The translations under genes were made by a program, and so were the position numbers. Below are positions 19,995-59,667 of a stretch of DNA of 64,000 nt, in pieces. Under the pieces are notes generated by a model. That model searched no databases, was not told where the DNA came from, and saw only the letters and a program-made list of their open reading frames with translations. Origin of the DNA: Macrostomum hystrix (lineage: Eukaryota > Animalia > Platyhelminthes). How positions within the stretch are numbered: the stretch's first letter is position 1; each line of letters begins with the position of its first letter. Location: positions 5,394,001-5,458,000 of the forward strand of contig CATNEN010000011.1 in NCBI GenBank assembly GCA_950097015.1, written 5' to 3'.

Positions 19995-20953
19995 ATGGAG
20001 GTGCTGCAGCCGCTGCTGCTGCTGCTGCTGCTGCTGCTGCACCAGACGCTAGTTCTGCCAACCGCCGCCCGAATAACCGGCCCCAACAACTACACGAACA
20101 TCGTCGATCGGATTGTCGACTCGATGTTTCGCAACTACAACAAGCATCATCGCCCAGTGCCGGCTAGTCGGCAGTCCAAAGACGGAAAAATCGAAGAGGA
20201 CCCAACCGAAGTCGAGGTCAACATGAAAATCCTCAGCATCAACAAGGTCGACGTCATCAACATGGAATTCACCTTAGACATGTATCTGAGACAGTTCTGG
20301 CGCGACGATCGACTCAGGTGGGACGACAAGGAGTTCAGTTTCTACAATGACTCCATCGCAATTCCAGCAAAGAAGGACAACCTGTGGCTACCAGATTTAT
20401 TCTTCCGCAATGGCAAACAGGGCTACCTTCACGAGATGACGCAACCGAATTACCTGATCCGCGTGGATCCCAACGGGAACATTCTGTACTCGCAGAAGGT
20501 GACAGTGAGATTCGCGTGCCAAATGCAGCTGCAGACGTTCCCGATGGACACCCAGATCTGCGACATGAACATCGGCAGCTACGGCTACACCACTTCGAAG
20601 CTGCTGTTCCGATGGAAGCGAGACGAGAAGAAAGTACCAGTCGAACTGGACGACACGATGCAGATATCCGAGTTCAACACTCCGACTGAGAAGGAGGTCA
20701 GCCCGATCGACTGCACGAAAGGAAGCGCCACAAGTACTGGCAGCTACGCCTGTCTGAAGGTTATCTTCAAACTCGAGAGACAACTGGGCAGCTACCTGTC
20801 CAGCACCTACATTCCTGCCATTCTCATCGTCACCGTGAGCTGGCTGAACTTCTGGATCAGCGTTGAGGCCGTGCCAGCACGGGTGTCTCTGGGTGTGCTC
20901 ACTCTGCTGGGCATCCTCACCCAGGGCATGTCCGTTATCAACAACCTTCCCAG
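19995..20953 (+). CDS. Cys-loop ligand-gated chloride channel (GluCl-like), first coding exon A: signal peptide, ECD, TM1, TM2
   Basis: ATG at 19995 with poly-Leu signal peptide. Motifs MYLRQFWRDDRL, WLPDLFFRN, Cys-loop CQMQLQTFPMDTQIC, loop C CTKGSATSTGSYACL and anion-selective TM2 PARVSLGVLTLL. Donor CCCAG|GTAAGG after 20953 (phase 2). Confidence 0.9.
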
Positions 20954-21169
20954 GTAAGGTGGCAAGTAGGGAGCATGGAAATACCGACTGCAATGGGGAG
21001 CGAGGTGGTTATTTTATGAAGAAAGAAATGAGGTGGTTTTCTTTAGGAGGCTAGGAGTAGGTCGTTTGTTCCGCAGAGTAGGGAGGAGGCTGCTTTTGAG
21101 AAGTGGAGAGTGATGTGGTTGTTGTGGGGATAGGCAGTGAGGTGGTTGGTTCATGCGAGATGGGGAGTG

Positions 21170-21755
21170 AGGTGGGTCTTTTACGCCCGGCGAGGAGTGA
21201 GGAAGTTGTTTTTGTAAACCGTACGAGGATTGAGGTGGCTGTTTTTTAAGCCAGGCGGGGAGTGAAGTGGTTGTTTTTTAAGCCAGGCGGGGAGTGAAGT
21301 GGTTGTTTTTTAAGCCAGGTGGGGAGTGAAGTGGTTGTTTTTTAAATCCAGGCGGGGAGTGAAGTGGTTGTTTTTTAAGCCAGGCGGGGAGTGAGGTGGT
21401 TGTTTTTTAAGCCAAGCCGGGAGGTGTTTGTTTTGCCCAGCGGGGAGTGAGGTGGTTGTTTTACGAGTACACCCGGCGGGGAGTGAGGTGGTTGTTTTAC
21501 GAGTACACCCGGTGGGGAGTGAAGTGGTTGTTTTACGCTAGGCGGGGAGTGAGGTGGTTGTTTTACGAGTACACCCGGTGGGGAGTGAAGTGGTTGTTTT
21601 ACGCTAGGCGGGGAGTGAGGTGGTTGTTTTTTAAGCCAAGCCGGGAGTGAGGTGTTTGTTTTGCTCGGCGGGGATCAAGGTGGTTCTTTTACGAGTACAC
21701 CCGGTGGGGAGTGAGGTGGTTGTTTTACGCTAGGCGGGGAGTGAGGTGGTTGTTT
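21170..21755. repeat. G-rich degenerate minisatellite (about 30-36 bp)
   Basis: Core GGCGGGGAGTGAGGTGGTTGTTTT. Confidence 0.85.
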
Positions 21756-22377
21756 CCCAGAGCTGTAAGATGTCTGCATATTAACTCATTCACAAAGAGC
21801 GCTTCAAAAACAAATAACAAATCCGTCAATTCAGTTAAGAATTTGTATATTCACTAGAAAAACTTTCCGCAATTTTTCGAATTTCTGTATTTGACAACTG
21901 CATATGAAATTGTAGTACGCGGTTTGTCTAGCAGCTGTAGCAGATTGGACTCAATTTACGTGAACTCATTCTCCAAGCTCTCAAATCCTTCTTTTTTCGC
22001 GAGTAAAATCAGCATATCACAAAGGTACCATGGCGAGTGTTTGAATCGAATGGTTGTAAACCATTCTAGAATTAGCATTTCTGCGCATGTCAGCTTTACA
22101 ATGGCATTAGTGCCGCTTCGAAAGTTTTAATTGTGCTAAATTTCAATAAGTTTTTGTTTGTCTGCATTTCCAGTGTTTTCGTTGCAGAACTATAAACAAT
22201 ATTAGGGTAAGAGTGTTTTATTTGTTTATAACAAATTAAAAAATTAATTTTTTTTCTTTCTTTGAACTCTATTTGATTTTGACTTCCAAATTGCTTTAGT
22301 CTCATTTCGCTTTATAAGATTTCTGACATGGGTTCTGAAACAAAAACTCTCTGAATGTACATCGGCCCAGACTCTCA

Positions 22378-23720
22378 CGGAGATTCTAGTGAGATTCTAG
22401 TTAGATTCTAGTGAGATTCTAGTTAGATTCTAGTGAGATTCTAGTTAGATTCTAGTGAGATTCTAGTGAGATTCTAGTGAGATTCTATTGAGATTCTAGT
22501 GAGATTCTAGTGAGATTCTATTGAGATTCTAGTGAGATTCTATTAAGATTCTAGTGAGATTCTAGTGAGATTCTAGTGAGATTCTAGTGAGATTCTAGTG
22601 AGATTCTAGTGAGATTCTAGTGAGATTCTAGTGAGATTCTATTGAGATTCTAGTGAGATTTTAGTGAGATTCTAGTGAGATTCTATTGAGATTCTAGTTA
22701 GATTCTAGTGAGATTCTAGTTAGATTCTAGTGAGATTCTAGTTAGATTCTAGTGAGATTCTAGTTAGATTCTAGTTAGATTCTAGTTAGATTCTAGTTAG
22801 ATTCTATTGAGATTCTAGTGAGATTCTAGTGAGATTCTATTGAGATTCTAGTGAGATTCTATTAAGATTCTAGTGAGATTCTAGTGAGATTCTAGTGAGA
22901 TTCTAGTTAGATTCTAGTGAGATTCTAGTGAGATTCTAGTGAGATTCTAGTGAGATTCTAGTGAGATTCTATTGAGATTCTAGTGAGATTCTAGTGAGAT
23001 TCTAGTGAGATTCTATTGAGATTCTAGTTAGATTCTAGTGAGATTCTAGTTAGATTCTAGTGAGATTCTAGTTAGATTCTAGTTAGATTCTAGTTAGATT
23101 CTAGTTAGATTCTAGTGAGATTCTAGTGAGATTCTAGTGAGATTCTAGTGAGATTCTATTGAGATTCTAGTGAGATTCTAGTGAGATTCTAGTGAGATTC
23201 TAGTGAGATTCTAGTGAGATTCTAGTGAGATTCTATTGAGATTCTAGTGAGATTCTATTGAGATTCTAGTGAGATTCTACTGAGATTCTATTAAGATTCT
23301 ACTGAGATTCTAGTGAGATTCTAGTGAGATTCTAGTGAGATTCTAGTGAGATTCTAGTTAGATTCTATTGAGATTCTAGTGAGATTCTAGTGAGATTCTA
23401 TTGAGATTCTAGTGAGATTCTAGTGAGATTCTAGTGAGATTCTAGTGAGATTCTAGTGAGATTCTAGTGAGATTCTAGTGAGATTCTAGTGAGATTCTAG
23501 TGAGATTCTAGTGAGATTCTAGTGAGATTCTAGTGAGATTCTATTAAGATTCTAATGAGATTCTAGTGAGATTCTATTGAGATTCTAGTGAGATTCTAGT
23601 GAGATTCTAGTGAGATTCTATTAAGATTCTAGTGAGATTCTAGTGAGATTCTAGCGAGATTCTAGTAAGATTTCAGTGAGATTCTATTGAGATTCTAGTA
23701 AGATTTCAGTGAGATTCTTA
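22378..23720. repeat. 11-bp satellite GAGATTCTAGT
   Basis: Direct reading of the tandem unit, with variants TAGATTCTAGT and GAGATTCTATT. Confidence 0.96.
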
Positions 23721-24287
23721 GAGCGTTATTTCCAGATATTCAAATGAGATTTTTCAAGAGTGCTTAATCGCAACGTTTTCCATTGCTGACCTCATAAAAA
23801 TGCTTGCCGAAAATTTTTCGCTTTTAGTCTTCTTCGCTCGAAAATAATATCCCCCTTCTTTGCGAAACTCTTCTAAATGACTGAAATGAAGAATGAAAAA
23901 AATCTGAAAATCTAAGAAACATTTCTCCCCCTTCGATTGCACCCTCTCTGCAGTCGGTAAAACTGCTGACGGATTCCTAACAATGAGCCCCAGCTGTTGA
24001 ATTCCTGCAGAGAGTCTAAGAGCGGTTGTGGTGTATTGCAGGATTTTTGGGGAAATAATCTGCAAATAAACTTATTCGCCTCGATGGCTAGCAACTCAGG
24101 GTTGATCAGAAGTGAATTCTAAGGCTCCTACTCAGTTGACTGCCTGGCTACTTCTGTTTGCAGTGTCTTCAATTCTCTGCTGAACTGCCCACTTCTGATT
24201 CAGCTGAGAATGGGCTGGGCTGGGCACTTCGCTTCGCGACCAAACGACTAACCCACGATTTCGGCCCGATTCTAAAAAATGCGATTT

Positions 24288-24339
24288 TTATCTATCTATC
24301 TATCCATCAATCTATCTATCTATCTATCTATCTATCCAG

Positions 24340-24386
<47 letters not shown>

Positions 24387-24433
24387 ATCTATGTATCTAT
24401 CTATCTATCTATCTATCCATCTATCTATCTATC

Positions 24434-24465
<32 letters not shown>
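24288..24465. repeat. (TATC)n microsatellite
   Basis: Direct reading. Confidence 0.95.
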
Positions 24466-24924
24466 GCTTTTTTCACGTCTTTTAATTAAAAAGATGACAG
24501 CTTAGAACGATTGCTGCAGTTCGTTTAGTCCCTTCAAAGGCACAAAATATTACAAAAGGTTTTCCTAAAAGATAAAAAATATTTTTCTTCTATCGACTCA
24601 ATGCATTCAGGATTTTGTTCTAAACGACTTTGCGCTAATCCGTGCTTTAATCCAACGCAAAGACAGGCGAAAAAACTCGACTGAAAATATTAAAAAAATA
24701 CTTAATCGTTGACGTCTGACTGCTAAATTTCTAACAAATGCCGAATAGGTTGAACAGAGGGTGAGATTAGGGACTGCAAGTTAAAGTGTGACAGGTGCAC
24801 AGATGCACTTCTGAATCTCAAGGATCCAATCTCTGAATCTTTAGACAGATTCTGGGGAGATTCCAGGAAGATTCTTGGAAAAACTCTTCTGTGGAGCTTC
24901 TTAAAAAAGTATCAGCAAGATTCT

Positions 24925-25360
24925 GGCGAGATTCTAGTGAGATTCTATTGAGATTCTAGTGAGATTCTAGTGAGATTCTATTATAGTTAGATTCTAGTGA
25001 GATTCTAGTGAGATTCTATTGAGATTCTATTGAGATTCTAGTGAGATTCTAGTGAGATTCTATTGAGATTCTAGTGAGATTCTAGTGAGATTCTAGTTAG
25101 ATTCTAGTGAGATTCTAGTTAGATTCTAGTGAGATTCTAGTTAGATTCTAGTGAGATTCTAGTGAGATTCTAGTTAGATTCTAGTTAGATTCTAGTTAGA
25201 TTCTAGTGAGATTCTAGTGAGATTCTAGTGAGATTCTAGTTAGATTCTAGTGAGATTCTAGTTAGATTCTAGTGAGATTCTAGTTAGATTCTAGTGAGAT
25301 TCTCGTGAGATTCTATTGAGATTATTTTAAGATTCTATTGAGATTCTCGTGAGATTCTAG
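24925..25360. repeat. 11-bp satellite GAGATTCTAGT, second block
   Basis: Same unit as 22378-23720. Confidence 0.93.
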
Positions 25361-26169
25361 TGAGTTTCTGTGGAGATTCTGAAGATATTTTGAGAAGATT
25401 CTGGAAAGATTCTCAGGTGATTCTGAAGAGATTCATGATATTAGAAGCAGAGAGTAAATTTGAGCATCTCAGACCCAACCCCAGACTCATGTATCTCCCC
25501 TCACTCAGCCAGTCAGCAGTCAGACCCGTATTTATCCCGCGAGATTCAGCAATCTGACCTAATCTGCTAGCATCACAGCTGCAGCAGCAGTTCAATTTAT
25601 TTTCAATCAAAATTATCCACCCCATTAAGGTCTATCTGCCTCCTGAGAAAAAAATTTGCTTCAAATTTCTCACAGCGCGTGGATTCCTGCGTTCTGGGCA
25701 GACGGCCCCTGCTCTGGTAAATCGCGTTCCCAAATTGTGTCTGATGCAGCACAGACTTTGGGCGGGTAGCAGAAAAAATTACTGACTTCCGGTTTCCGCT
25801 TGCAGAGATGAGAAATCTGTGCCAGCCAGCCGAATACTCGACCCAGCAACCAGCCACCCTCGCTTTTTTCCTATCTCAGCCTCAGAGATAACACCTGCTA
25901 CCCCACTCCAGGTTGAATAAGCAAGTCATGCCTTCTCTCATTCACTCCTGCAATGTCTCCTGTTCCCATGCCAGCTCATGTGTGTGTTCCTTTTTCCATA
26001 GTAATTTCAATTTTATCAGTGCCCTTATTTTTGAGATACTCATTTTTAAGGGAGGGGGAATAAATGTACACTAGGCTAATTATCATCTTCTCACAGCCTG
26101 CGAACCTAACAGCATTCCTCCAGACCCTGTTCCCTACCTGTTATGCTCTGTTATGCTACCTGTTATTCT

Positions 26170-26800
26170 CCTATTCCCTCTTTCTTCCCCACTCTTCCCC
26201 TCTCCACCCTCTCTCCCCCTCTCCACCCCCTTCACCCTCTTTCCCTCTCCACCCTCTCTTGCCCTCTCTTCCCCTCTCTTCCCCTCTATTCCCCTCTCCA
26301 CCCCCTCCACTCTCTCTTCCCCTCTCCACCCTCTCTTCCCCTCTATTCCCCTCTCCACCCTCTCTTGCCCTCTCTTGCCCTCTCTTCCCCTCTATTCCCC
26401 TCTCTTCCCCTCTATTCCCCTCTACACCCTCTCTTGCCCTCTCTTGCCCTCTCTTCCCCTCTATTCCCCTCTCCACCCTCTCTTGCCCTCTCTTGCCCTC
26501 TCTTCCCCTCTATTCCCCTCTCTTCCCCTCTCCACCCTCTCTTCCCCTCTCCACCCTCTCTTCCCCTCTCCACCCTCTCTTCCCCTCTCCACCCTCTCTT
26601 CCCCTCTCCACTCCACCCTTTCTTCCCCTCTCCACCCTCTTTTCCCCTCTCCACCCTCTCTCCCCCTCTCCACCCTCTCTCGCCCTCTTCCCCTCTCCAC
26701 CCTCTCCACCCTCTCTTCCCCTCTCAACCCTCTCCACCCTCTCTTCCCCTCTTCACCCCTCCACCCTCTCTTCCCCTCTCTTCCCCTCCCCACCCACTCT
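26170..26800. repeat. Polypyrimidine (C/T) low-complexity repeat
   Basis: Motifs such as CCCCTCTCCACCCTCTCTT. Confidence 0.9.
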
Positions 26801-27689
26801 TCTCCTTTTTCCATCTTCCCCTCTGTCCCGCTCTCCCCAGCTACTTTCCTATGTTTTCCCCTTTTAAAACTTCTCTCCCCATTTGTTTTTTCAAAGCAGC
26901 GAAAAGTTCCTTATTTATAATTGCTTAACAAGAAGATACTCGTTGCTCAATATGTCCGGGTAAACTTCGCATTTAATCTTCCGTCGGGTACTTATCGGCT
27001 TTTGAAAGGCGGCTAGCGATGCTGCAGCCCTCGCCGCGGAGAATACTCGGGGTGTTAATATCGTTGCTAAAGAAATTCGCGCTGATAGGAGGGGTGGAAT
27101 GGATAATTTGTGTGGGATCTTAGCGAGGCCAAGGGCGTGTCGGGGTCCCGAATTTTGCAGAGATACGCGCCTAGTTGCATCGGCTGCACTCTATAAATAG
27201 CTGATAGTTTTATAGAATAAATGAATAACGTGTGTAGCTGTCGCATGCGTGTGTCTTTGCGTGTGTCTTATTCTTTAGCTCTATCTTACTAGATATCTCT
27301 CCAATCAGTCATTTGTGGGCCCAAGCAGCAGTAGCAGCAGCAGCAGCAGATGAGCAGCAGATGGTACTCAATGGAAGCCCCGATTATTAAGAATTATTTT
27401 CGCCCTAAGGCAGTTCAGTTCGTGCCAAGTCGGAACTGTCATTTTGTGTATTAAAACTTGTCGATACTAGGCATAAAATATTTGTAGAAGACTCTGGGAA
27501 GATTCCTGAGTCCTTCTCAAAAAAGATGCTTTAGAGATTCAAGGTGGATTCGCAAGAGATTCTAGGGAGATTTTGGAGAGATTCTGGGAAAACTCTTGTG
27601 AGATTCTCAGAAGAATCTAAGGCTAATCCGGAGAGATTCTGGGAAGTTTTTGCGGAAATTCTGGGGATTTTCTCGAGCGATTCCAGGAA

Positions 27690-30600
27690 GATTCTGGAGA
27701 GATTCTGAAGAGATTCTGGAGAGATTCTGGAGAGATTCCGGAGAGATTCTGGAGAGATTCTGGAGAGATTCTGGAGAGATTCCGGAGAGATTCTGGAGAG
27801 ATTCTGGAGAGATTCTGGAGAGATTCCGGAGAGATTCTGGAGAGATTCTAGAGAGATTCCGGAGAGATTCTGGAGAGATTCTGGAGAGATTCTGGAGAGA
27901 TTCTGGAGAGATTCTGGAGAGATTCTAGAGAGATTCCGGAGAGATTCTGGAGAGATTCTGGAGAGATTCTGGAGAGATTCTGGAGAGATTCCGGAGAGAT
28001 TCTGGAGAGATTCTGGAGAGATTCTGGAGAGATTCTGGAGAGATTCTGGAGAGATTCTGGAGAGATTCTGGAGAGATTCTAGAGAGATTCCGGAGAGATT
28101 CTGGAGAGATTCTGGAGAGATTCTGGAGAGATTCTGGAGAGATTCCGGAGAGATTCTGGAGAGATTCTGGAGACATTTTAGAGAGATTCTGGAGAGATTT
28201 TAGAGAGATTCCCGAGAGATTCTAGAGAGATTCTGGAGAGATTCTGGAGAGATTCTGGAGAGATTCTGGAGAGATTCCGGAGAGATTCTGGAGAGATTCT
28301 GGAGACATTTTAGAGAGATTCTGGAGAGATTTTAGAGAGATTCCCGAGAGATTCTAGAGAGATTCTGGAGAGATTCTGGAGAGATTCTGAAGAGATTCTA
28401 GAGAGATTCCGGAGAGATTCTGGAGAGATTCTGGAGAGATTCTGGAGAGATTCTGGAGAGATTCCGGAGAGATTCTGGAGAGATTCTGGAGAGATTCTGG
28501 AGAGATTCTGGAGAGATTCTGGAGAGATTCTGGAGAGATTCTGGAGAGATTCTAGAGAGATTCCGGAGAGATTCTGGAGAGATTCTGGAGAGATTCTGGA
28601 GAGATTCTGGAGAGATTCTGGAGAGATTCTGGAGAGATTCCGGAGAGATTCTGGAGAGATTCTGGAGAGATTCTGGAGAGATTCTGGAGAGATTCTGGAG
28701 AGATTCTGGAGAGATTCTGGAGAGATTCTAGAGAGATTCCGGAGAGATTCTGGAGAGATTCTGGAGAGATTCTGGAGAGATTCTGGAGAGATTCCGGAGA
28801 GATTCTGGAGAGATTCTGGAGACATTTTAGAGAGATTCTGGAGAGATTTTAGAGAGATTCCCGAGAGATTCTAGAGAGATTCTGGAGAGATTCTGGAGAG
28901 ATTCTGGAGAGATTCTGGAGAGATTCCGGAGAGATTCTGGAGAGATTCTGGAGACATTTTAGAGAGATTCTGGAGAGATTTTAGAGAGATTCCCGAGAGA
29001 TTCTAGAGAGATTCTGGAGAGATTCTGGAGAGATTCTGAAGAGATTCTAGAGAGATTCCGGAGAGATTCTGGAGAGATTCTGGAGAGATTCTGGAGAGAT
29101 TCTAGAGAGATTCTGGAGAGATTCTGGAGAGTTCTGAAGAGATTCTGGAGAGATTCTAGAGAGATTCTGGAGAGATTCCGGAGAGATTCTGGAGAGATTC
29201 TGGAGAGATTCTGGAGAGTTCTGGAGAGATTCTAGAGAGATTCTAGAGAGATTCTAGAGAGATTCTAGAGAGATTCTGGAGAGATTCTGGAGAGATTCCG
29301 GAGAGTTCTGGAGAGATTTTAGAGAGATTCTGGAGAGATTCCGGAGAGATTCTGGAGAGATTCTGGAGAGATTCTGGAGAGATTCTGAAGAGATTCCGGA
29401 GAGTTCTGGAGAGATTCTAGAGAGATTCTAGAGAGATTCTGAAGAGATTCCGGAGAGATTCTGGAGAGATTCCGGAGAGATTCTGAAGAGATTCTAGAGA
29501 GATTCTAGAGAGATTCTGAAGAGATTCCGGAGAGATTCTGGAGAGATTCCGGAGAGATTCTGAAGAGATTCTGAAGAGATTCCGGAGAGTTCTGGAGAGA
29601 TTCTAGAGAGATTCTAGAGAGATTCTGAAGAGATTCCGGAGAGATTCTGGAGAGATTCCGGAGAGATTCTGGAGAGATTCTGGAGAGTTCTGGAGAGATT
29701 CTAGAGAGATTCTGGAGAGATTCCGGACAGATTCTGGAGAGATTCTGGAGAGATCTGGAGAGATTTTAGAGAGATTCTGGAGAGATTCCGGAGAGATTCT
29801 GGAGAGATTCTGGAGAGTTCTGGAGAGATTTTAGAGAGATTCTGGAGAGATTCTGGAGAGATTCTGGAGAGATTCTAGAGAGATTCTGAATAGATTCCGG
29901 AGAGATTCTGGAGAGATTCCGGAGAGATTCCGGAGAGATTCCGGAGAGATTCTGGAGAGATTCTGGAGAGATTCTGGAGAGATTCTGGAGAGATTCGGAA
30001 GAGATTCTGGAGAGATTCCGGAGAGATTCTGGAGAGATTCCGGAGAGATTCTGGAGAGATTCTGGAGAGATTCTGGAGAGATTCTGGAGAGATTCCGGAG
30101 AGATTCTGGAGAGATTCTGGAGACATTTTAGAGAGATTCTGGAGAGATTTTAGAGAGATTCCCGAGAGATTCTAGAGAGATTCTGGAGAGATTCTGGAGA
30201 GATTCTGAAGAGATTCTAGAGAGATTCCGGAGAGATTCTGGAGAGATTCTGGAGAGATTCTGGAGAGATTCTAGAGAGATTCTAGAGAGATTCTGGAGAG
30301 ATTTTAGGGAGATTCTGGAGAGTTCTGGAGAGATTCTAGAGAGATTCTAGAGAGATTCTAGAGAGATTCTAGAGAGATTCTGGAGAGATTCTGGAGAGAT
30401 TCCGGAGAGTTCTGGAGAGATTTTAGAGAGATTCTGGAGAGATTCCGGAGAGATTCTGGAGAGATTCTGGAGAGATTCCGGAGAGTTCTGGAGAGATTCT
30501 GGAGAGATTCTAGAGAGATTCTGAAGAGATTCCGGAGAGATTCTGGAGAGATTCTGGAGAGTTCTGGAGAGATTCTGGAGAGTTCTGGAGAGATTCTAGA

Positions 30601-33172
30601 GAGATTCTGGAGAGATTCCGGAGAGATTCTGGAGAGATTCTAGAGAGATTCCGGAGAGATTCTGGAGAGATTCTGGAGAGATTCTGGAGAGATTCTGGAG
30701 AGATTCTGAAGAGATTCTGGAGAGATTCTGGAGAGTTCTGGAGAGATTCTGGAGAGATTCTAGAGAGATTCTGGAGAGATTCTGGAGAGTTCTGAAGAGA
30801 TTCTGGAGAGATTCTAGAGAGATTCTGGAGAGATTTTAGGGAGATTCTGGAGAGTTCTGGAGAGATTCTAGAGAGATTCTAGAGAGATTCTAGAGAGATT
30901 CTAGAGAGATTCTGGAGAGATTCTGGAGAGATTCCGAAGAGTTCTGGAGAGATTTTAGAGAGATTCTGGAGAGATTCCGGAGAGATTCTGGAGAGATTCT
31001 GGAGAGATTCCGGAGAGTTCTGGAGAGATTCTAGAGAGATTCTAGAGAGATTCTGAAGAGATTCCGGAGAGATTCTGGAGAGATTCCGGAGAGATTCTGG
31101 AGAGATTCTGGAGAGATTTTAGGGAGATTCTGGAGAGTTCTGGAGAGATTCTAGAGAGATTCTAGAGAGATTCTAGAGAGATTCCGGAGAGATTCTGGAG
31201 AGATTCTGGAGAGTTCTGGAGAGATTCTAGAGAGATTCTGGAGAGATTCCGGAGAGATTCTGGAGAGATTCTGGAGAGTTCTGGAGAGATTTTAGAGAGA
31301 TTCTGGAGAGATTCTGGAGAGATTCTGGAGAGATTCTGAAGAGATTCTGGAGAGATTCTAGAGAGATTTTAGAGAGATTCCGGAGAGATTCTGGTGAGAT
31401 TCTGGAGAGATTCTGGACAGATTCTGAAGAGATTTTGGAGAGATTCTGGAGAGATTCTGGAGAGATTATGGAGAGATTGTAGAGAGATTCTGGAGAGATT
31501 CTGGAGAGATTCTGGAGAGATTCTGGAGAGATTCTGGAGAGATTCCGGAGAGATTCTGGAGAGATTCTGGAGACATTTTAGAGAGATTCTGGAGAGATTT
31601 TAGAGAGATTCCCGAGAGATTCTAGAGAGATTCTGGAGAGATTCTGGAGAGATTCTGAAGAGATTCTGGAGAGATTCTGGAGAGTTCTGGAGAGATTCTG
31701 GAGAGATTCTGGAGAGATTCTAGAGAGATTCTGGAGAGATTCTGGAGAGTTCTGAAGAGATTCTGGAGAGATTCTAGAGAGATTCTGGAGAGATTTTAGG
31801 GAGATTCTGGAGAGTTCTGGAGAGATTCTAGAGAGATTCTAGAGAGATTCTAGAGAGATTCTAGAGAGATTCTGGAGAGATTCTGGAGAGATTCCGAAGA
31901 GTTCTGGAGAGATTTTAGAGAGATTCTGGAGAGATTCCGGAGAGATTCTGGAGAGATTCTGGAGAGATTCCGAAGAGTTCTGGAGAGATTTAGAGAGATT
32001 CTGGAGAGATTCCGGAGAGTTCTGGAGAGATTCTGGAGAGATTCTAGAGAGATTCTGAAGAGATTCCGGAGAGATTCTGGAGAGATTCCGGAGAGATTCT
32101 GAAGAGATTCCGGAGAGATTCTGGAGAGATTCTGGAGAGATTCTAGAGAGATTCTGAAGAGATTCCGGAGAGATTCTGGAGAGATTCTGGAGAGATTCCG
32201 AAGAGTTCTGGAGAGATTTTAGAGAGATTCTGGAGAGATTCCGGAGAGTTCTGGAGAGATTCTGGAGAGATTCTAGAGAGATTCTGAAGAGATTCCGGAG
32301 AGATTCTGGAGAGATTCCGGAGAGATTCTGAAGAGATTCCGGAGAGATTCTGGAGAGATTCTGGAGAGATTCTAGAGAGATTCTGAAGAGATTCCGGAGA
32401 GTTCTGGAGAGATTCTGGAGAGATTCTAGAGAGATTCTGAAGAGATTCCGGAGAGATTCTGGAGAGATTCTAGAGAGATTCTGAAGAGATTCCGGAGAGA
32501 TTCTGGAGAGATTCCGGAGAGATTCTGGAGAGATTCTGGAGAGATTTTAGGGAGATTCTGGAGAGTTCTGGAGAGATTCTAGAGAGATTCTAGAGAGATT
32601 CTAGAGAGATTCTAGAGAGATTCTGGAGAGATTCTGGAGAGATTCCGAAGAGTTCTGGAGAGATTTTAGAGAGATTCTGGAGAGATTCCGGAGAGATTCT
32701 GGAGAGATTCTGGAGAGATTCCGGAGAGTTCTGGAGAGATTCTAGAGAGATTCTAGAGAGATTCTGAAGAGATTCCGGAGAGATTCTGGAGAGATTCCGG
32801 AGAGATTCTGGAGAGATTCTGGAGAGTTCTGGAGAGATTCTAGAGAGATTCTGGAGAGATTCCGGAGAGATTCTGGAGAGATTCTGGAGAGTTCTGGAGA
32901 GATTTTAGAGAGATTCTGGAGAGATTCCGGAGAGATTCTGGAGAGATTCTGGAGAGTTCTGGAGAGATTTTAGAGAGATTCTGGAGAGATTCTGGAGAGA
33001 TTCTAGAGAGATTTTAGAGAGATTCTGGAGAGATTCTGGAGAGATTCTAGAGAGATTCTAGAGAGATTCTGAAGAGATTCCGGAGAGATTCTGGAGAGAT
33101 TCCGGAGAGATTCTGGAGAGATTATGGAGAGATTCTAGAGAGATTCTGGAGAGATTCTAGAGAGATTCTAGA
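27690..33172. repeat. 11-bp satellite GAGATTCTGGA (about 5.5 kb)
   Basis: Tandem unit with variants GAGATTCCGGA, GAGATTCTAGA and GAGATTCTGAA, and recurring marker blocks. Confidence 0.97.
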
Positions 33173-36100
33173 GGATGAGAGGGAGAGGATGAGAAGGAGA
33201 GGATGAGAGGGAGAGGATGAGAGGGAGAGGATGAGAAGGAGAGGATGAGAGGGAGAGGATGAGAAGGAGAGGATGAGAGGGAGAGGATGAGAAGGAGAGG
33301 ATGAGAGGGAGAGGATGAGAGGGAGAGGATGAGAAGGAGAGGATGAGAGGGCGAGGATGAGAAGGAGAGGATGAGAGGGAGAGGATGAGAGGGAGAGGAT
33401 TAGAGGGAGAGGATGAGAAGGAGAGGATGAGAGGGAGAGGATGAGAGGGAGAGGATGAGAAGGAGAGGATGAGAGGGAGAGGATGAGAAGGAGAGGATGA
33501 GAGGGAGAGGATGAGAAGGAGAGGATGAGAGGGAGAGGATGAGAAGGAGAGGATGAGAGGGAGAGGATGAGAGGGAGAGGATGAGAAGGAGAGGATGAGA
33601 GGGAGAGGATGAGAAGGAGAAGATGAGAGGGAGAGGATGAGAAGGAGAGGTTGAAAAGGAGAGGATGAGAAGGAGAGGATGAGAGGGAGAGGATGAGAGG
33701 GAGAGGATGAGAAGGAGAGGATGAGAAGGAGAGGATGAGAGGGAGAGGATGAGAAGGAGAGGATTAGAGGGCGAGGATGAGAAGGAGAGGATGAGAGGGA
33801 GAGGATGAGAAGGAGAGGATGAGAAGGAGAGGATGAGAGGGAGAGGATGAGAAGGAGAGGATGAGAGGGAGAGGATGAGAGGGAGAGGATGAGAGGGAGA
33901 GGATGAGAGGGAGAGGATGAGAAGGAGAGGATGAGAGGGAGAGGATGAGAGGGAGAGGATGAGAGGGAGAGGATGAAAAGGAGAGGATGAGAAGGAGAGG
34001 ATGAGAGGGAGAGGATGAGAAGGAGAGGATGAGAGGGAGAGGATGAGAGGGAGAGGATGAGAAGGAGAGGATGAGAAGGAGAGGATGAGAGGGAGAGGAT
34101 GAGAAGGAGAGGATTAGAGGGCGAGGATGAGAAGGAGAGGATGAGAGGGAGAGGATGAGAAGGAGAGGATGAGAAGGAGAGGATGAGAGGGAGAGGATGA
34201 GAAGGAGAGGATGAGAGGGAGAGGATGAGAGGGAGAGGATGAGAGGGAGAGGATTAGAGGGCGAGGATGAGAAGGAGAGGATGAGAGGGAGAGGATTAGA
34301 GGGCGAGGATGAGAAGGAGAGGATGAGAAGGAGAGGATGAGAAGGAGAGGATGAGAAGGAGAGGATGAGAAGGAGAGGATGAGAGGGAGAGGATTAGAGG
34401 GCGAGGATGAGAAGGAGAGGATGAGAGGGAGAGGATGAGAAGGAGAGGATGAGAGGGAGAGGATGAGAGGGAGAGGATGAGAAGGAGAGGATGAGAGGGA
34501 GAGGATGAGAAGGAGAGGATGAGAGGGAGAGGATGAGAAGGAGAGAATGAGAGGGCGAGGATGAGAAGGAGAGGATGAGAGGGAGAGGATGAGAAGGAGA
34601 GGATGAGAGGGAGAGGATGAGAAGGAGAGGATGAGAGGGAGAGGATGAGAAGGGGAGGATGAGAGGGAGAGGATGAGAGGGAGAGGATGAGAAGGAGAGG
34701 ATGAGAGGGAGAGGATGAGAAGGAGAGGATGAGAGGGAGAGGATGAGAAGGAGAGGATGAGAGGGAGAGGATGAGAAGGAGAGGATGAGAGGGAGAGGAT
34801 GAGAGGGAGAGGATGAGAAGGAGAGGATGAGAGGGAGAGGATGAGAGGGAGAGGATGAGAAGGAGAGGATGAGAGGGAGAGGATGAGAAGGAGAGGATGA
34901 GAGGGAGAGGATGAGAAGGAGAGGATGAGAGGGAGAGGATGAGAAGGAGAGGATGAGAGGGAGAGGATGAGAGGGAGAGGATGAGAAGGAGAGGATGAGA
35001 GGGAGAGGATGAGAAGGAGAGGATGAGAGGGAGAGGATGAGAAGGAGAGGATGAGAGGGAGAGGATGAGAAGGAGAGGATGAGAGGGAGAGGATGAGAGG
35101 GAGAGGATGAGAAGGAGAGGATGAGAGGGAGAGGATGAGAAGGAGAAGATGAGAGGGAGAGGATGAGAAGGAGAGGATGAAAAGGAGAGGATGAGAAGGA
35201 GAGGATGAGAGGGAGAGGATGAGAGGGAGAGGATGAGAAGGAGAGGATGAGAAGGAGAGGATGAGAGGGAGAGGATGAGAAGGAGAGGATTAGAGGGCGA
35301 GGATGAGAAGGAGAGGATGAGAGGGAGAGGATGAGAAGGAGAGGATGAGAAGGAGAGGATGAGAGGGAGAGGATGAGAAGGAGAGGATGAGAGGGAGAGG
35401 ATGAGAGGGAGAGGATGAGAGGGAGAGGATGAGAGGGAGAGGATGAGAAGGAGAGGATGAGAGGGAGAGGATGAGAGGGAGAGGATGAGAGGGAGAGGAT
35501 GAAAAGGAGAGGATGAGAAGGAGAGGATGAGAGGGAGAGGATGAGAGGGAGAGGATGAGAAGGAGAGGATGAGAAGGAGAGGATGAGAGGGAGAGGATGA
35601 GAAGGAGAGGATTAGAGGGCGAGGATGAGAAGGAGAGGATGAGAGGGAGAGGATGAGAAGGAGAGGATGAGAAGGAGAGGATGAGAGGGAGAGGATGAGA
35701 AGGAGAGGATGAGAGGGAGAGGATGAGAGGGAGAGGATTAGAGGGCGAGGATGAGAAGGAGAGGATGAGAGGGAGAGGATTAGAGGGCGAGGATGAGAAG
35801 GAGAGGATGAGAAGGAGAGGATGAGAGGGAGAGGATGAGAAGGAGAGGATGAGAAGGAGAGGATGAAAGGGAGAGGATTAGAGGGCGAGGATGAGAAGGA
35901 GAGGATGAGAGGGAGAGGATGAGAAGGAGAGGATGAGAGGGAGAGGATGAGAGGGAGAGGATGAGAGGGAGAGGATGAGAGGGAAAGGATGAGAGGGAGA
36001 GGATTAGAGGGCGAGGATGAGAACGAGAGGATGAGAGGGAGACGATGAGAAGGAGAGGATGAGAGGGAGAGGATGAGAGGGAGAGGATGAGAAGGAGAGG

Positions 36101-36492
36101 ATGAGAAGGAGAGGATGAGAGGGAGAGGATGAGAAGGAGAGGATGAGAAGGAGAGGATGAGAGGGAGAGGATTAGAGGGCGAGGATGAGAAGGAGAGGAT
36201 GAGAGGGAGAGGATTAGAGGGCGAGGATGAGAAGGAGAGGATGAGAGGGAGAGGATGAGAAGGAGAGGATGAGAGGGAGAGGATGAGAGGGAGAGGATGA
36301 GAGGGAGAGGATGAGAGGGAAAGGATGAGAGGGAGAGGATTAGAGGGCGAGGATGAGAAGGAGAGGATGAGAGGGAGAGGATGAGAAGGAGAGGATGAGA
36401 GGGAGAGGATGAGAGGGAGAGGATGAAAAGGAGAGGATGAGAAGGAGAGGATGAGAGGGAGAGGATGAGAAGGAGAGGATGAGAGGATGAGG
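33172..36492. repeat. 14-bp polypurine satellite (about 3.3 kb)
   Basis: Unit ATGAGAGGGAGAGG / ATGAGAAGGAGAGG. Confidence 0.97.
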
Positions 36493-38452
36493 GCAGGAAA
36501 GTAAATTGAAGAAAATCAAAATGTAAATCGTTCGACGAAGCCAGGTTTCTCATGAAGGTATTGGCTGAGCTAAAGAATTATAATTTTCGTTTCAGTTTGG
36601 CTCAGACCCAAACAATTTATTGGTTAGTGGAATGCAACACCTGTCTAGAACTGATAAGGACCAGACATGCCTGATTGGGTATCTAAGCGACAAAGGTGTG
36701 ACAGATTCAAACTCTCGTCTTGATTTCCTTTCCTAGAAAGCGAAGATCGGCCTCAACTTTTATTGACTGACTAGGATCTCGCCTTTCTCATAACTATTTC
36801 GCTTTTTTCATAAATAATAAATGTACCCCTTGTCAGTGCCAGAGAATTCGATTTTTGTGCTGAGTTTAATTCGAGTATAGTTAAATGAATCGAACTTGTC
36901 TACTTATAGTAGACAACAGCATTTATGCAGAAACTAAAAATTTTATTTTAAAATCTGCAAAACATGTTTTTCAAGATTCCAAACCTATTTTTAGTACTCC
37001 TATTATAAGCTCATTGACTCAAGCAAAACGGAAAGAAAAAAAGTAAAAAAATCACAAATTTTCTTTCTACTCAGAAAAATTAGGGCCGGAGTTAAATCTC
37101 GAAGTTCATGATTGATAGAATAGAAAATTAATCGATTGTTTCATTTTAATGACCGACGCAGATATTAGACAATAGCAGTGGGAAAGATTTTCGGTACTGA
37201 AGTACTGAATTCTGTTTTTAACCTATTGTCTGTTAGAATCTGTGCTAGCCATTGTTAACGTGAAGCTGGAAAATGCTCTGTTGCGGTAAATAATGGGTTT
37301 ATTTTATAATGGGTTTAAAAATTATGGGATTATAGTAGGCCGGGGAGTTTTAATACTGAAAGATTGCAGCGAGAATTTTTTGGAGAATATTAGAAGATGG
37401 GAAGAGGAAGGGAAGAGGAAGGGGAGAGAAAGGAAGGGGAGAGGAAAAGGAGGGGAAGGGGAAGGGGAGAGGAACGATCAAGTAAGGGTATAGGAAGAGG
37501 AGAGAAATGGGGAGGAAGGGGAGAGAGTAAGGGGAGAAGAATGATAGAGTAAGGGTATAGTAAGGGGGAGGAAGTGTAGAGAAGGGCAATGGGGGAGAGA
37601 AAATGAGAGAGGAAAGAGGAGTGGAACAAATAAAGGATGACAAATAGGTTTTATATCAGAAAACATATTGCCCTTTGGAAGAATGATAAACTTTACATTG
37701 AAACGGGTGTCTGAAGACAGTTTTTTGGATTACAGATAGGATTAGTGATAATACGATATATGACTAGCCGAAAGGTGCTGTGAAAGCAACACGAATATGC
37801 TTCAGGAATAAAAGTTTTAATCTTTCCGAAAGAAAATTGTTTTCAAGAAACCTATAAATAGAACACGCTCCGTCGTATATTAATGGTAGTAATGGTGGAA
37901 CTCAAGGTCAGATTTTGAGTAGATCTATTTGATGAAATTAGCTAATCATTTCTGTAGCCGCCCCACTTCCTTCAGTCCGATAAAGCTAGCTTTCATTTTG
38001 CGGCAATACTCTAGATTAAAGAAGAACCTTATCTTTTCAGACTTTTCTGTCCAGCTCTCTCAGTCTCTTCCGTCCAGACTCATGAGTACAGTGGGAACAA
38101 TCTCCTAGAATCTCCCGAGGTTCCGTAGTGTGCCCTGATTGGCTGGGTAGGTTCGGTTTCTAAGGAGAGGTGAGATTATAGAAATTCGTCGACAACCGGA
38201 CAACGAAGACAAAAAAGGCTCCTTCCCCTCGGATTAACAAATCCCTTGGCTCCCTTATCCCCACTGAGGAATGAACTATATCTCCCTCTACTGTGAGACT
38301 TAAGCGGCCTCAGAAATAGAAGAAGCGAGCAATACACAGAAAATTCGATTGAAATTTGAGTAGGGCGGAGCAGCAATCATTGATAAGCCAGGCAGGGAGG
38401 GAGACGCTCGAGCTTTTGCTCTGTAGCTGCTGAGTTCACAGTTCCAGTCACA

Positions 38453-39384
38453 ATGCAGCTCATTGTGCTTTGCTGCCTGCTGACCGCGGCTGGAGCCATC
38501 AGCGGGCCAGATAACTACACCAACATTGTTGACCGCATCGTGGACACAATCTTCGAGAACTACAACAAGCACCAGAGGCCGGTGTCTCATCACGTTCCTC
38601 AGCAGCACTACGACAGTTCCCAGAGGCCGATTGAGCCACCAACCGAAGTCGAAGTGAACATGAAAATTCTCAGCATCACCAAAGTTGACGTCATCAACAT
38701 GGAGTTCAGCGTTGACATGTACCTGAGACAGTTCTGGCGGGACCATCGACTGGAATGGGACACCAGAAGACAGTTCAGCTTCTACAACGACTCCATCGCC
38801 ATCCCGGCCAAGAAGGAGCATCTGTGGCTCCCTGATTTGTTCTTTCGCAATGGCAAGGAGGGCTATTTGCACAAGATGACGCAGCCGAATTATCTCATCC
38901 GGGTGGAGCCAGACGGAAGTATTCTGTACTCGCAGAAGATCACAATGAAGTTTTCCTGTCAGATGCAGCTGCAGACATTCCCCATGGACACGCAGACATG
39001 CTTCATCAACATTGGCAGCTACGGTTACACCACAAAGAATCTGCTTTTCAAATGGAAGAGAGACAAATTAAAAAGCGCGGTAGAGATGGACAATATGCAG
39101 ATCTCGGAGTTCAACACGCCAAAGTATGTCGAAGTGTCCGACTGTACAAAGGGCAGTGCAACCAGCACCGGCAGCTACGCTTGCCTCATCGCCATCTTCA
39201 AGCTGGAGAGACAGCTTAGCAGCTATTTGGCTGGCACCTACATTCCTGCCATTCTCATTGTCACCGTGAGCTGGCTCAACTTCTGGGTCAGCATTGAAGC
39301 TGTGCCAGCCAGGGTGACTCTGGGCCTGCTCACCCTGCTGGGCATACTCACCCAGGCCTCCACTGTCATGGCCAGCCTGCCAAG
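38453..39384 (+). CDS. Cys-loop ligand-gated chloride channel (GluCl-like), first coding exon B: signal peptide, ECD, TM1, TM2
   Basis: Paralogous to exon A throughout (GPDNYTNIVDRIVD, MYLRQFWRD, CQMQLQTFPMDTQTC, PARVTLGLLTLL). Donor CCAAG|GTCAGG after 39384 (phase 2), at the same codon as exon A. Confidence 0.92.
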
Positions 39385-39419
39385 GTCAGGGGGTGAAATG
39401 GACTGGCTAACAGTAGAGG

Positions 39420-41062
39420 GCGGATGGATGAGAGGAGAGAGCGGATGGATGAGAGGAGAGAGCGGATGGATGAGAGGAGAGAGTGAATGGGATGAGAGTA
39501 GAAAGCGGATGGATGAGAGGAGAGAGCGGATGGATGAGAGGAGAGAGCGGATGGATGAGAGGAGAGAGCGGATGGATGAGAGGAGAGAGCGGATGGATGA
39601 GAGTAGAGAGCGGATGGATGAGAGGAGAGAGCGGATGGATGAGAGGAGAGAGCGGATGGATGAGAGGAGAGAGCGGATGGATGAGAGGAGAGAGCGGATG
39701 GATGAGAGGAGAGAGCGGATGGATGAGAGTAGAGAGCGGATGGATGAGAGGAGAGAGCGGATGGATGAGAGGAGAGAGCGGATGGATGAGAGGAGAGAGC
39801 GGATGAATGAGAGGAGAGAGCGGATGGATGAGAGGAGAGAGCGGATGGATGAGAGGAGAGAGCGGATGGATGAGAGTAGAGAGCGGATGGATGAGAGGAG
39901 AGAGCGGATGGATGAGAGGAGAGAGCGGATGGATGAGAGGAGAGAGCGGATGGATGAGAGGAGAGAGCGGATGAATGAGAGGAGAGAGCGGATGGATGAG
40001 AGGAGAGAGCGGATGGATGAGAGGAGAGAGCGGATGGATGAGAGTAGAGAGCGGATGGATGAGAGGAGAGAGCGGATGGATGAGAGGAGAGAGCGGATGG
40101 ATGAGAGGAGAGAGCGGATGGATGCGAGGAGAGAGCGGATGGATGAGAGTAGAGAGCGGATGGATGAGAGGAGAGAGCGGATGGATGAGAGGAGAGAGCG
40201 GATGAATGAGAGGAGAGAGCGGATGGATGAGAGGAGAGAGCGGATGGATGAGAGGAGAGAGCGGATGGATGAGAGTAGAGAGCGGATGGATGAGAGGAGA
40301 GAGCGGATGGATGAGAGGAGAGAGCGGATGGATGAGAGGAGAGAGCGGATGGATGAGAGGAGAGAGCGGATGAATGAGAGGAGAGAGCGGATGGATGAGA
40401 GGAGAGAGCGGATGGATGAGAGGAGAGAGCGGATGGATGAGAGTAGAGAGCGGATGGATGAGAGGAGAGAGCGGATGGATGAGAGGAGAGAGCGGATGGA
40501 TGAGAGGAGAGAGCGGATGGATGAGAGGAGAGAGCGGATGGATGAGAGTAGAGAGCGGATGGATGAGAGGAGAGAGCGGATGGATGAGAGGAGAGAGCGG
40601 ATGGATGAGAGTAGAGAGCGGATGGATGAGAGGAGAGAGCGGATGGATGAGAGTAGAGAGCGGATGGATGAGAGGAGAGAGCGGATGGATGAGAGGAGAG
40701 AGCGGATGGATGAGAGTAGAGAGCGGATGGATGAGAGTAGAGAGCGGATGGATGAGAGTAGAGAGCGGATGGATGAGAGGAGAGAGCGGATGGATGAGAG
40801 GAGAGAGCGGATGGATGAGAGTAGAGAGCGGATGGATGAGAGGAGAGAGCGGATGGATGAGAGGAGAGAGCGGATGGATGAGAGTAGAGAGCGGATGGAT
40901 GAGAGGAGAGAGCGGATGGATGAGAGGAGAGAGCGGATGGATGAGAGGAGAGAGCGGATGGATGAGAGTAGAGAGCGGATGGATGAGAGGAGAGAGCGGA
41001 TGGATGAGAGTAGAGAGCGGATGGATGAGAGTAGAGAGCGGATGGATGAGAGGAGAGAGCGA
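39420..41062. repeat. 21-bp intronic minisatellite
   Basis: Unit GAGAGCGGATGGATGAGAGGA. Confidence 0.96.
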
Positions 41063-41454
41063 ATGATTCATAGAAGGTCTAAGAGGGTAAGGAGGAGTTT
41101 ATAAAAGTTTTTCGCTGATTCCTGAATATAAGTCGCACGCTTAAAACCTGGGCTTGTCGGTAGAACAGTTGTTTCCTATGTTTTGTAACTGTGGCCACTT
41201 TAATTAATTTTAAAAGCACATCAGAATCGGCGATACGCACCCAGCAACAATCAGTGCTTCTCTCTTGTCAAAGATTGAAAGAAAAAACGAGGCGCTAGTC
41301 TTGTCATGTAAGGAAACGAAAATACTTCAGATCGTGATGATAGTTGGAAGAATTATTGTCCAACAGATACACAAATAGGCTGCGGTTTTTATATCTATAA
41401 ATATTTTTGTTTGGAAAATTTGGTTACACTTCTATAGATAGATAGGATGATAAC

Positions 41455-41830
41455 GCAGATAAATGGGATAGATAGATAGGATAGAGATAGGTGGGATAGA
41501 TATCGATGGGATAGATAGATGGGATAGATATAGATGGGATAGATATAGATGGGATAGATATAGATGGGATAGATAGACGGGATGGATATAGATGGGATAG
41601 ATATAGATGGGATAGATATAGATGGGATAGATATAGATGGTATAGATATAGATGGGATAGATATAGATAGGATAGATATAGATGGGATAGATAGACGGGA
41701 TGGATATAGAGGGGATAGATATAGAGGGGATAGATGTAGTTGAGATAGATAGATAGATCGGATAGATAGATAGATCGGATAGATAGATAGATTGGATAGA
41801 TAGATGGGAAAGATAGATGGGTTAGATATA
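41455..41830. repeat. GATA-type compound microsatellite
   Basis: Units GATA and GATGGGATAGATATA. Confidence 0.9.
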
Positions 41831-42414
41831 TAGGAAAATAGAAATAGATTTCAGGGGAAATTAATAGGTGGAATAGACAGGCGGAAGAAACCGGTGGAAA
41901 TAGACAATTGGAGACAGACAGTTGAGAGACGCAGGAAAGGATTGGCGTAATTCTGCGCTGGGCCATTCATATACTATGAAAGTCCCATAGTTACATAGTT
42001 TCTTCACACTATGGCTATGTTGGTTTGCATGTTCAACTCTGTCATCTCCAACTTCATCTTCATCAACCTAACCCTCCCCGCGCGCACTCCCTTCCACTCC
42101 TAGAAGAAAGCTTTTCATTTCCGCTGTTGAAGTTCTGCCAGGCCCGAGTCTAACCATGGCCTTATTTGCTCGTGCACTAATTTTCACGGCGGGCGAGAAG
42201 TTTGAGTTGAAAGAGGAGAAGCGAAATAACTAACTAAAAGTACATTTGATAATTATCCAAATCTATTTTGGGGTATCGGCATAATTTACTAATTTAAAGG
42301 TGCAATTAAAAAACATGGCTAAAATTAATGGCGTTTTTTTAGTTTTGCGATATTTACGCTCAATAGAAATAGAAAGAAGAGAGAAGAAAATGGGAAGGAA
42401 GGGTGGAAGGGAGA

Positions 42415-42690
42415 GAGCGGAGAGTGGAGAATAGAGGGGCGGAAGACAGAGAATAGAGGGCGGAAGACAAAGAATAGAGGGTGGAAGACAGAGAATAGGG
42501 GGCGGAAGACAGAGAGTAGAGGGCGGAAGACAGAGAGTAGAGGGTGGAAAACAGAGAGTAGAGGGTGGAAAACAGAGAGTAGAGGGCTGTAGACTGAGGG
42601 TAGAGGGCGGTAGACTGAGGGTAGAGGGCGGTAGACTGAGGGTAGAGGGCGGTAGACTAAGGGTAGAGTGCGGTAGACTGAGGGTAGGGG
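42415..42690. repeat. About 21-bp purine-rich repeat upstream of the terminal exon
   Basis: Unit AGAGTAGAGGGCGGAAGACAG and variants. Confidence 0.85.
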
Positions 42691-42767
42691 CGGAAGAGAA
42701 CTACCCAACAGCGCCCAGCAACAAACACCGCATCCTAACTTACTTCCCAACCCTGCCGCACTCGCAG

Positions 42768-43311
42768 GGTGGCCTACATCAAGGCCATAGACATCTGGAT
42801 CATCGCCAGCATCATGTTCGTAATCGGAGCCCTGATCGAGTTCGCCGTGGCTTCATTCCGCGCCAGGCGAACCAAAATAGAGAACTGGCAGCAGGAGATT
42901 CGCTGCGTGGTCCGCTCCGAGCTGCAGCGACTCGCTGTCATACGCGGACCTCCGCTGACGATGCCGCCAAATTCAGCCGGCATCAACCAGCATCATCATC
43001 CTCATCACCTGCTGGCCGGGGCCACTGTCGGCAGCGGTGGCGGCGTCGGCGGCTATCCAGGATTTCCTGAGGAGTTGGAGGACCTACTGGCGGTCAGCAT
43101 TGAGGAGGGCGGAGGAGTGGGCGGCGGCGGCATGGCGAAGGGCGTGATGGGCGGAGCGCCCGCAGCGTCGCCCGTGCCACCTCCCGACTCAGATATCGAC
43201 GCTTACAGCAGATTCCTGTTTCCCGCCTGTTTTCTGCTGTACAACTGCTTCTACTGGCTGTACTATCTGGTGCTGGTGATCAAAATTGAGCCGGGTCAGA
43301 CTGAGAAATAG
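42768..43311 (+). CDS. Cys-loop chloride channel terminal exon: TM3, intracellular loop, TM4
   Basis: Acceptor CTCGCAG|G restores AGG (Arg) to give LPRVAYIKAIDIW. TM3 ...FVIGALIEFAV; TM4 IDAYSRFLFPACFLLYNCFYWLYY; stop TAG at 43311. Confidence 0.92.
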
Positions 43312-56051: not shown

Positions 56052-56250
56052 GTGAGCTCAGAAATCGCATCCTGTGTAGCTTTTTAAACTGCTGCTTACT
56101 TCAACACCACTGCCAAGGCTACTGACACCCCACTGCCTCTACTGACACCCCAATGCCTCTACTGACACCCCACTGCCTCTACTGACACCCCAATGCCACC
56201 ACTGACACCCCGCATCTTTATTAATACATTCCGTCGCTGCCTCACCGCAG

Positions 56251-59505: not shown

Positions 59506-59548
<43 letters not shown>

Positions 59549-59667
59549 GTTGGCTTCGAAGTCTGGCTTGGATCATTGCGGACTGCGTCATGTTTGATAA
59601 TGTTGCGGCTAGACGACGGTGATGTCCGCTCAAAGCCTGTCTGCTCATGATTGCTGTCTGTAGACAT
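59077..59667 (-). CDS. Intronless homeobox transcription factor (ANTP class, NK-like/Dlx-like, divergent)
   Basis: Homeodomain RRSRSNFTANQTRALESAYSQSDYVTRQDRDQLAASLGLSPCQVKIWFQNRRAKSRR (Q50, N51) with poly-Q and poly-A tracts. Likely ATG at 59667 (MSTDSN). Confidence 0.82.

Follow-up and report, generated by a model that had tools for sequence, protein, structure and literature searches.

Clustered protocadherin and UGT1A loci consist of tandem variable first exons, each with a start codon, a signal peptide and a splice donor, which are spliced to downstream constant exons, and gene conversion between the variable exons is typical of clusters of this type. Among the Cys-loop receptors, the unc-49 GABA receptor locus of Caenorhabditis elegans is described as having three C-terminal copies in tandem, one of which is spliced to an N-terminus that all products share (Bamber et al. 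1999, as summarised in PMC8841521), and the nematode avr-14 variants, which encode the alpha3A and alpha3B subunits of a glutamate-gated chloride channel (GluCl), have the ligand-binding domain in common but not the channel part and C-terminal region (PMC8841521). The glutamate-gated flatworm subunits SmGluCl-2 and SmGluCl-3 are each encoded by one exon (PMC3757052). Here we analysed a stretch of 64,000 nucleotides from the flatworm Macrostomum hystrix (assembly GCA_950097015.1, contig CATNEN010000011.1, positions 5,394,001 to 5,458,000 of the forward strand; hereafter the window, with positions counted from its first letter), in which two exons for the front half of an anion channel subunit, A and B, are followed by one exon for the back half, C. 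On balance, we think that A and B are alternative first exons which are each spliced to the shared exon C.

The locus resembles unc-49 in that one Cys-loop locus would combine a shared part with one of several tandem duplicates, and the resulting subunits can differ in pharmacology and assembly. However, it is not of the unc-49 type with a common N-terminus and alternative C-terminal copies, because the orientation is reversed: the N-terminal three fifths of the protein, comprising the ligand-binding domain and the transmembrane helices TM1 and TM2, alternate here, and TM3, the cytoplasmic loop and TM4 are common. In contrast to the selection of a 3' exon in unc-49, the choice would fall at the 5' end, at a promoter or a trans-splice site. 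The avr-14 gene is likewise an anion-selective, glutamate-gated Cys-loop gene giving two subunits with one half in common, but its mode of sharing is the reverse of that in the Macrostomum locus. The protocadherin and UGT1A clusters are similar in their tandem paralogous first exons with a downstream constant exon, and also with respect to gene conversion, which we found between the corresponding exons of Macrostomum lignano. The Macrostomum locus differs from them in having just two variable exons and no conserved upstream promoter element that we could find, in that its layout is read from genomic exons, and in that the variable and constant exons meet within a channel's transmembrane domain, at the TM2-TM3 linker, with the pore-lining helix on the variable side. 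SmGluCl-2 and SmGluCl-3 belong to the same flatworm GluCl clade and have two Cys loops and the Pro-Ala-Arg (PAR) filter as well, but unlike these single-exon genes, the Macrostomum loci have their front exon in duplicate and the TM2-TM3 linker interrupted by a phase-2 intron. A limited literature search yielded no description of a 5' modular design in any pentameric ligand-gated (Cys-loop) channel, and nothing relevant on ligand-gated chloride channels of Macrostomum.

Organization of the locus

The features of the locus and of its counterpart in M. lignano are listed in Table 1. The reading frame of exon A is open from its ATG for 319 codons plus 2 nt with no stop, and that of exon B from its ATG for 310 codons plus 2 nt. 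Their translations both contain a hydrophobic signal peptide (poly-Leu in A), a Cys-loop of the form C-x13-C, TM1 and a TM2 starting with Pro-Ala-Arg, together with the C-x12-C cysteine pair of loop C that is found in channels of the glycine receptor (GlyR) and GluCl type. The Pfam model Neur_chan_LBD (PF02931) matched A with an E value of 7e-50 and B with 3e-48, and Neur_chan_memb (PF02932) matched A and B with its positions 1–49 and exon C with its positions 52–121, so that the halves are complementary. Exon C is preceded by a CAG acceptor, and its frame from 42769 encodes the start of TM3, then a loop rich in Gly and Pro, and finally TM4 before a stop; TM3 was assigned from the Pfam match and TM4 from the translation and the tail profile described below. 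The predicted joined products are 500 (A+C) and 491 residues long (B+C), and the A and B proteins are 71–74% identical. Translations and Pfam matches thus agree with the initial annotation, made from the letters alone, that each front exon encodes an intact signal peptide, ligand-binding domain, TM1 and TM2 and that the two end at the same phase-2 position before a GT. The window holds two paralogous first exons in tandem, both of which have an ATG and end in donors of the same phase, and one downstream constant exon with an acceptor of matching phase and no private copy for either variable exon, as does the M. lignano locus. The signal peptide region of exon A contains a run of nine CTG (Leu) codons (window 19996–20049).

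Table 1. Positions of the exons, introns and candidate acceptor sites of the M. hystrix window and of the corresponding exons of M. lignano.
Feature	Position	Strand	Description
Exon A, variable first exon	19995–20953	+	Signal peptide, ligand-binding domain, TM1, TM2; phase-2 end at donor CAG/GTAAGG
Exon B, variable first exon	38453–39384	+	Signal peptide, ligand-binding domain, TM1, TM2; phase-2 end at donor AAG/GTCAGG
Exon C, constant exon	42768–43311	+	Completes Arg codon, then TM3, cytoplasmic loop, TM4, stop
A-to-B interval	20954–38452	+	17.5 kb, of which about two thirds is repeated in tandem; under the favoured model, the beginning of an intron of 21.8 kb
B-to-C intron (putative)	39385–42767	+	3.4 kb, mostly 21-bp and 15-bp satellites, CAG at end
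AG dinucleotide	19916–19917	+	78 nt upstream of exon A ATG; candidate cis or spliced-leader acceptor
AG dinucleotide	38425–38426	+	27 nt upstream of exon B ATG, behind a pyrimidine-rich run; candidate trans-splice acceptor or chance AG
A' exon	L001 10001–10945		M. lignano NIVC01001215.1
B' exon	L001 22006–23001		M. lignano NIVC01001215.1
C' exon, single	L001 24825–25295		M. lignano NIVC01001215.1

The C-x13-C motif within the ligand-binding domain places A and B among the Cys-loop receptors, and the PAR motif at the cytoplasmic end of TM2, together with the second cysteine pair, marks them as anion-selective. The four helices are divided, with TM1 and TM2 in A and again in B, and TM3 and TM4 in C, and a single polypeptide requires a splice from A to C or from B to C. 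The proteins nearest to exon A are P0001 (94% identical) and P0002 (82%) of M. lignano, followed by cestode and trematode proteins annotated as GluCl or 'glycine receptor', including subunit 2 isoform 2 of the Schistosoma mansoni GluCl, with 55% identity over 287 residues. These matches place the window in a Macrostomum species that is close to the sequenced M. lignano but distinct from it. The best relatives of solved structure are GlyR alpha1/alpha3 and the C. elegans GluCl alpha (3rhw). As judged from its sequence, the locus encodes flatworm-type anion-selective Cys-loop subunits related to Schistosoma SmGluCl-2. SmGluCl-2.2 is glutamate-gated in oocytes (PMC3757052), and by homology to this channel the Macrostomum subunits may be gated by L-glutamate.

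To look for further TM3-TM4 exons, we used tblastn (word size 2, E values up to 10) and a profile hidden Markov model (HMM) of the tail, which combined exon C with the corresponding tails (TM3 to TM4) of 64 homologues and was run over every stop-to-stop piece in the six frames of the 64 kb window. Exon C was matched once by tblastn, and the profile likewise gave one match, exon C itself (E value 3e-46), with all others at E values above 1, which we regarded as noise. Weak profile matches at 23722, 24569 and 26868 reached 6 bits or less, were out of order, and were rejected accordingly. Neither method detected a second TM3-TM4 exon in the window or any Cys-loop coding sequence between 20954 and 38452, where no convincing open reading frame (ORF) was seen either, and the single back exon that had been noted at the outset, with none between A and B, therefore stands.

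The window is free of any N. Within the A-to-B interval, Tandem Repeats Finder reported arrays at 21162–21755, 22380–23718, 24918–25380, 26174–26806, 27555–33173 and 33170–36492; the region from 27555 to 36492 consists of an 11-bp unit in about 514 copies and of 28/42/98-bp units over 3.3 kb. Behind exon B, a 21-bp unit is repeated about 79 times (39415–41065), and since it continues the frame of exon B, a B transcript left unspliced would have an ORF of 883 codons. All of these very large satellites within the putative introns have a strongly G-rich coding strand, with a GC skew of up to 0.98.

Conservation of the layout and selection on the variable exons

Using tblastn, we found counterparts of the three exons (A', B' and C') in the same layout on contig NIVC01001215.1 of M. 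lignano, which comes from an independent assembly and was analysed as segments L001 and L002. The donors and the acceptor lie at the same phase-2 position as in the window, and C and C' agree in each of their first 36 residues, TM3 included. Outside the three exons there is no detectable nucleotide similarity between the two loci. The 11 kb between A' and B' contain no TM3-TM4 exon that either tblastn or the profile HMM would detect. Because the layout of two front exons and one back exon occurs in both assemblies, the loss of a second TM3-TM4 exon from both of them is unlikely.

The public gene models for the M. lignano locus look wrong. In the model P0016 (L001:22006–22804), B' is truncated at 261 residues, although its frame in the genome runs on for 331 codons; C' is contained in no annotated M. 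lignano protein of 99–558 residues, and B' and C' are not joined in the annotation despite a spacing of 1.8 kb. Because the annotation omits C' and truncates B', we gave little weight to the tails which it attaches to A-type exons (see below).

Codon alignments were used to estimate the nonsynonymous (dN) and synonymous (dS) divergence of the front exons. These gave a dN of 0.18, a dS of 1.37 and a dN/dS of 0.13 between A and B, of 0.15, 1.35 and 0.11, respectively, between A and A', and of 0.18, 1.34 and 0.13 between B and B'. Both variable exons are thus under long-term strong purifying selection, and a neutral frame of 319 codons would not be expected to remain open at a dS of about 1.3. 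In the TM1-TM2 part, dN within a type is 0.051 (A-A') and 0.043 (B-B'), compared to 0.14–0.17 across types; the N-terminus likewise groups A with A', and the outer ends of TM2 differ between the A and B types, both of which have been kept. The grouping of TM1-TM2 by type shows that the A/B duplication predates the split of the window and M. lignano loci and that both types have been retained by selection.

The cores of the extracellular domains of A' and B' are 97.5% identical in DNA, with a dS of 0.09, and their N-termini and TM1-TM2 parts are as diverged as those of A and B. This pattern indicates recent gene conversion between A' and B', confined to the middle of the exons.

Transcription and probable donor usage of exon A

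Exon A was used as a query to find Logan contigs from four public runs (X1–X4) of one study, whose library type is not on record. The contigs were aligned to positions 19300–21160 only, leaving out 19996–20049 as a repeat. Contigs of 152–252 nt matched inside exon A with zero mismatches at 20262–20421, 20454–20705, 20491–20690, 20286–20462 and 20621–20839. Except for repeat matches of about 35 nt with three mismatches at 19388–19445, the upstream flank, the first 200 nt of the exon (to position 20201) and the intron beyond 20954 were free of contigs.

Two records run across the end of the exon. Record 14 of X2 (79 nt, 0 mismatches) is aligned over 20906–20954 and continues with 30 letters that differ from the intron, and the alignment of record 7 of X1 ends at 20953 and is followed by 23 letters that differ from it. 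Based on the exon-limited coverage and the break at the predicted donor, we took the runs as RNA and concluded that there is low expression of exon A, probably with use of its donor. The additional matched base of record 14, a G at 20954, equals the first base of exon C, and the base after the AG at 38426 is a C, which weakly favours exon C over that AG as the partner of the A donor. Deducing the partner from k-mers and the lengths of the contigs gave inconsistent numbers (28 vs. 31 letters past the junction), and we dropped this argument.

Some A-like contigs with 1–3 mismatches also depart at or just before the end of the exon (20903–20954), and one A-like contig with mismatches, record 8 of X1, has a depth of 27. 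Close paralogues or alleles of exon A are therefore expressed as well, some of them at greater depth than A itself.

Proposed model and its alternatives

In the model which we favour, the locus would be one transcription unit or a tightly linked pair with two alternative 5' exons, A and B, each of which would supply a start codon, a signal peptide, a ligand-binding domain, TM1 and a pore-lining TM2 of its own. Both would be spliced in phase 2 to the single exon C with TM3, cytoplasmic loop and TM4, and the resulting A+C and B+C subunits would differ in ligand-binding domain, TM1 and TM2 and have TM3, loop and TM4 in common. The pairing of the A donor with exon C and the splice from B to C are both predicted from the genomic sequence. 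A splice from the A donor to the AG at 38426 would bring a stop two codons on. The choice between A and B may be made by separate promoters, or by spliced-leader trans-splicing at B within a transcript starting upstream of A.

Spliced-leader trans-splicing affects 20–30% of Macrostomum genes, some of which have several spliced-leader sites (PMC8629364, PMC10468722), and the trans-splice motif of M. lignano is YTNCAG (PMC8629364). The AG dinucleotides that had been pointed out upstream of both ATGs are indeed present (Table 1), but neither matches this motif, and the one upstream of exon A is covered by no contig of the four runs. When the 600-nt stretches preceding A, B, A' and B' were compared, no k-mer that could represent a common promoter motif exceeded the shuffled expectation. 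The donor of exon A had been considered the one nearer to consensus, and we agree: its GTAAG fits the M. lignano donor consensus GT[G/A]AG, and the GTCAG of exon B does not.

The initial annotation had proposed that two subunits may share one TM3, loop and TM4. Its support has grown with the two-plus-one layout, which is also seen in M. lignano, with the signs of selection and with the break at the A donor, whereas the junction from 20953 to 42768 was not observed. Several points weigh against the favoured model. No contig joining these two positions was seen in alignments covering 19300–21160; the junction contig shares just 49 nt with A and may stem from a near-identical paralogue; and all four runs come from one study, with their RNA status deduced from exon-only coverage. 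The intron of 21.8 kb would have to skip exon B and the AG upstream of it. Furthermore, the M. lignano annotations P0001 and P0002 join A-type exons to short unrelated terminal exons, and no Macrostomum database protein joins an A- or B-type front to a C-type tail, as searched with exon A among proteins of 175–558 residues, with exon C among those of 99–315 residues and by look-ups of the exact product of exon C. Among 99 matches, no pair of homologues from other flatworms had identical tails but different heads.

The annotated tails speak for the strongest alternative, in which exon A would be a separate functional gene whose mRNA would end in another, non-conserved terminal exon or remain unspliced; it would give a truncated subunit of ligand-binding domain, TM1 and TM2 with a modulatory or dominant-negative role, and exon C would be used by B only. 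In P0002 (L001:10001–16514), A' is connected through canonical GT..AG sites to L001 16311–16511, a non-conserved exon of 67 residues. Read-through of the A donor would lead to a stop directly after the Arg codon, and truncated Cys-loop variants such as GLC-4B and the AVR-14A of D. immitis are known from nematodes (PMC8841521). However, the tails of P0001 and P0002 resemble neither each other nor anything in the window, and we rejected them as a conserved alternative end, since they lack conservation whereas TM3 of C and C' is identical. They also come from an annotation that is unreliable at this very locus, as seen from the neighbouring B' and C'. Moreover, exon A has kept its end, its phase and a consensus donor exactly where full-length relatives run into TM3, and its TM1-TM2 part is very strongly constrained. 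We therefore regard this alternative as unlikely, with roughly one chance in five of being right.

A second alternative is that exon A has a private TM3-TM4 exon, either collapsed within the satellites at 27.5–36.5 kb or located beyond the window. About two thirds of the A-to-B interval is tandem repeat and prone to collapse, and the inspection covered 64 kb only. On the other hand, the window is gap-free and holds no relic of such an exon above noise, and the independently assembled M. lignano locus has the same layout with no TM3-TM4 exon in the 11 kb between A' and B'. We consider a private exon improbable. An exon lost from the assembly had also been named at the outset as a finding that would overturn the sharing of exon C; the M. 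lignano layout makes it unlikely.

Finally, the lack of its own TM3-TM4 exon and its position 17.5 kb upstream of B behind satellites might suggest that exon A is a decaying partial duplicate of the 5' half, but this pseudogene reading, also raised in the initial annotation for the case of an unexpressed exon, was rejected and is close to refuted by the intact frame of 319 codons despite a dS of about 1.3 to B, the dN/dS of 0.11–0.13, the A-type residues conserved in M. lignano A' and P0001, and the exon-limited contigs from X1–X4 with their break at the donor.

Implications for receptor diversity

Returning to alternative first exons with a shared exon C, we lean slightly towards a more general statement, namely that Macrostomum diversifies its GluCl-type receptors by variable/constant exon loci which swap a whole ligand-binding domain with TM1 and the pore-lining TM2 onto a shared TM3-loop-TM4 part, that this design has been kept since before the two loci, be they paralogues or orthologues, separated, and that the selection of the first exon may be coupled to spliced-leader trans-splicing. 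Should both A+C and B+C be produced, a subunit would be composed of two halves that evolve independently and are divided at the TM2-TM3 linker. The halves with the binding site, the gate and the lining of the pore would then vary, and the lipid-facing surface of TM3 and TM4 would be common, as would the intracellular loop with its sites for trafficking, clustering and phosphorylation. Such a locus would be the mirror image of unc-49 and a natural 'chimera experiment' on the compatibility of modules in pentameric ligand-gated ion channels.

Because the M. lignano models truncate these genes, the receptor repertoires of flatworms have probably been miscounted. Channels of the GluCl type are anthelmintic targets, which makes it useful to know the real set of subunits in flatworms, and Macrostomum, a free-living animal, serves as a laboratory model in which transgenesis can be used.

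Other features of the window

Downstream of exon C, a satellite of 24/47-bp units at 47766–50000 is open in three forward frames for more than 800 codons, which we regard as an artefact of ORF finding and not as a gene. It is followed by an ORF of 448 codons on the plus strand (54741–56087), which has a RING-like Cys pattern at its start, and by one of 221 codons on the minus strand (59077–59742), whose translation contains poly-Gln runs and the motif WFQNRR of homeodomain helix 3.

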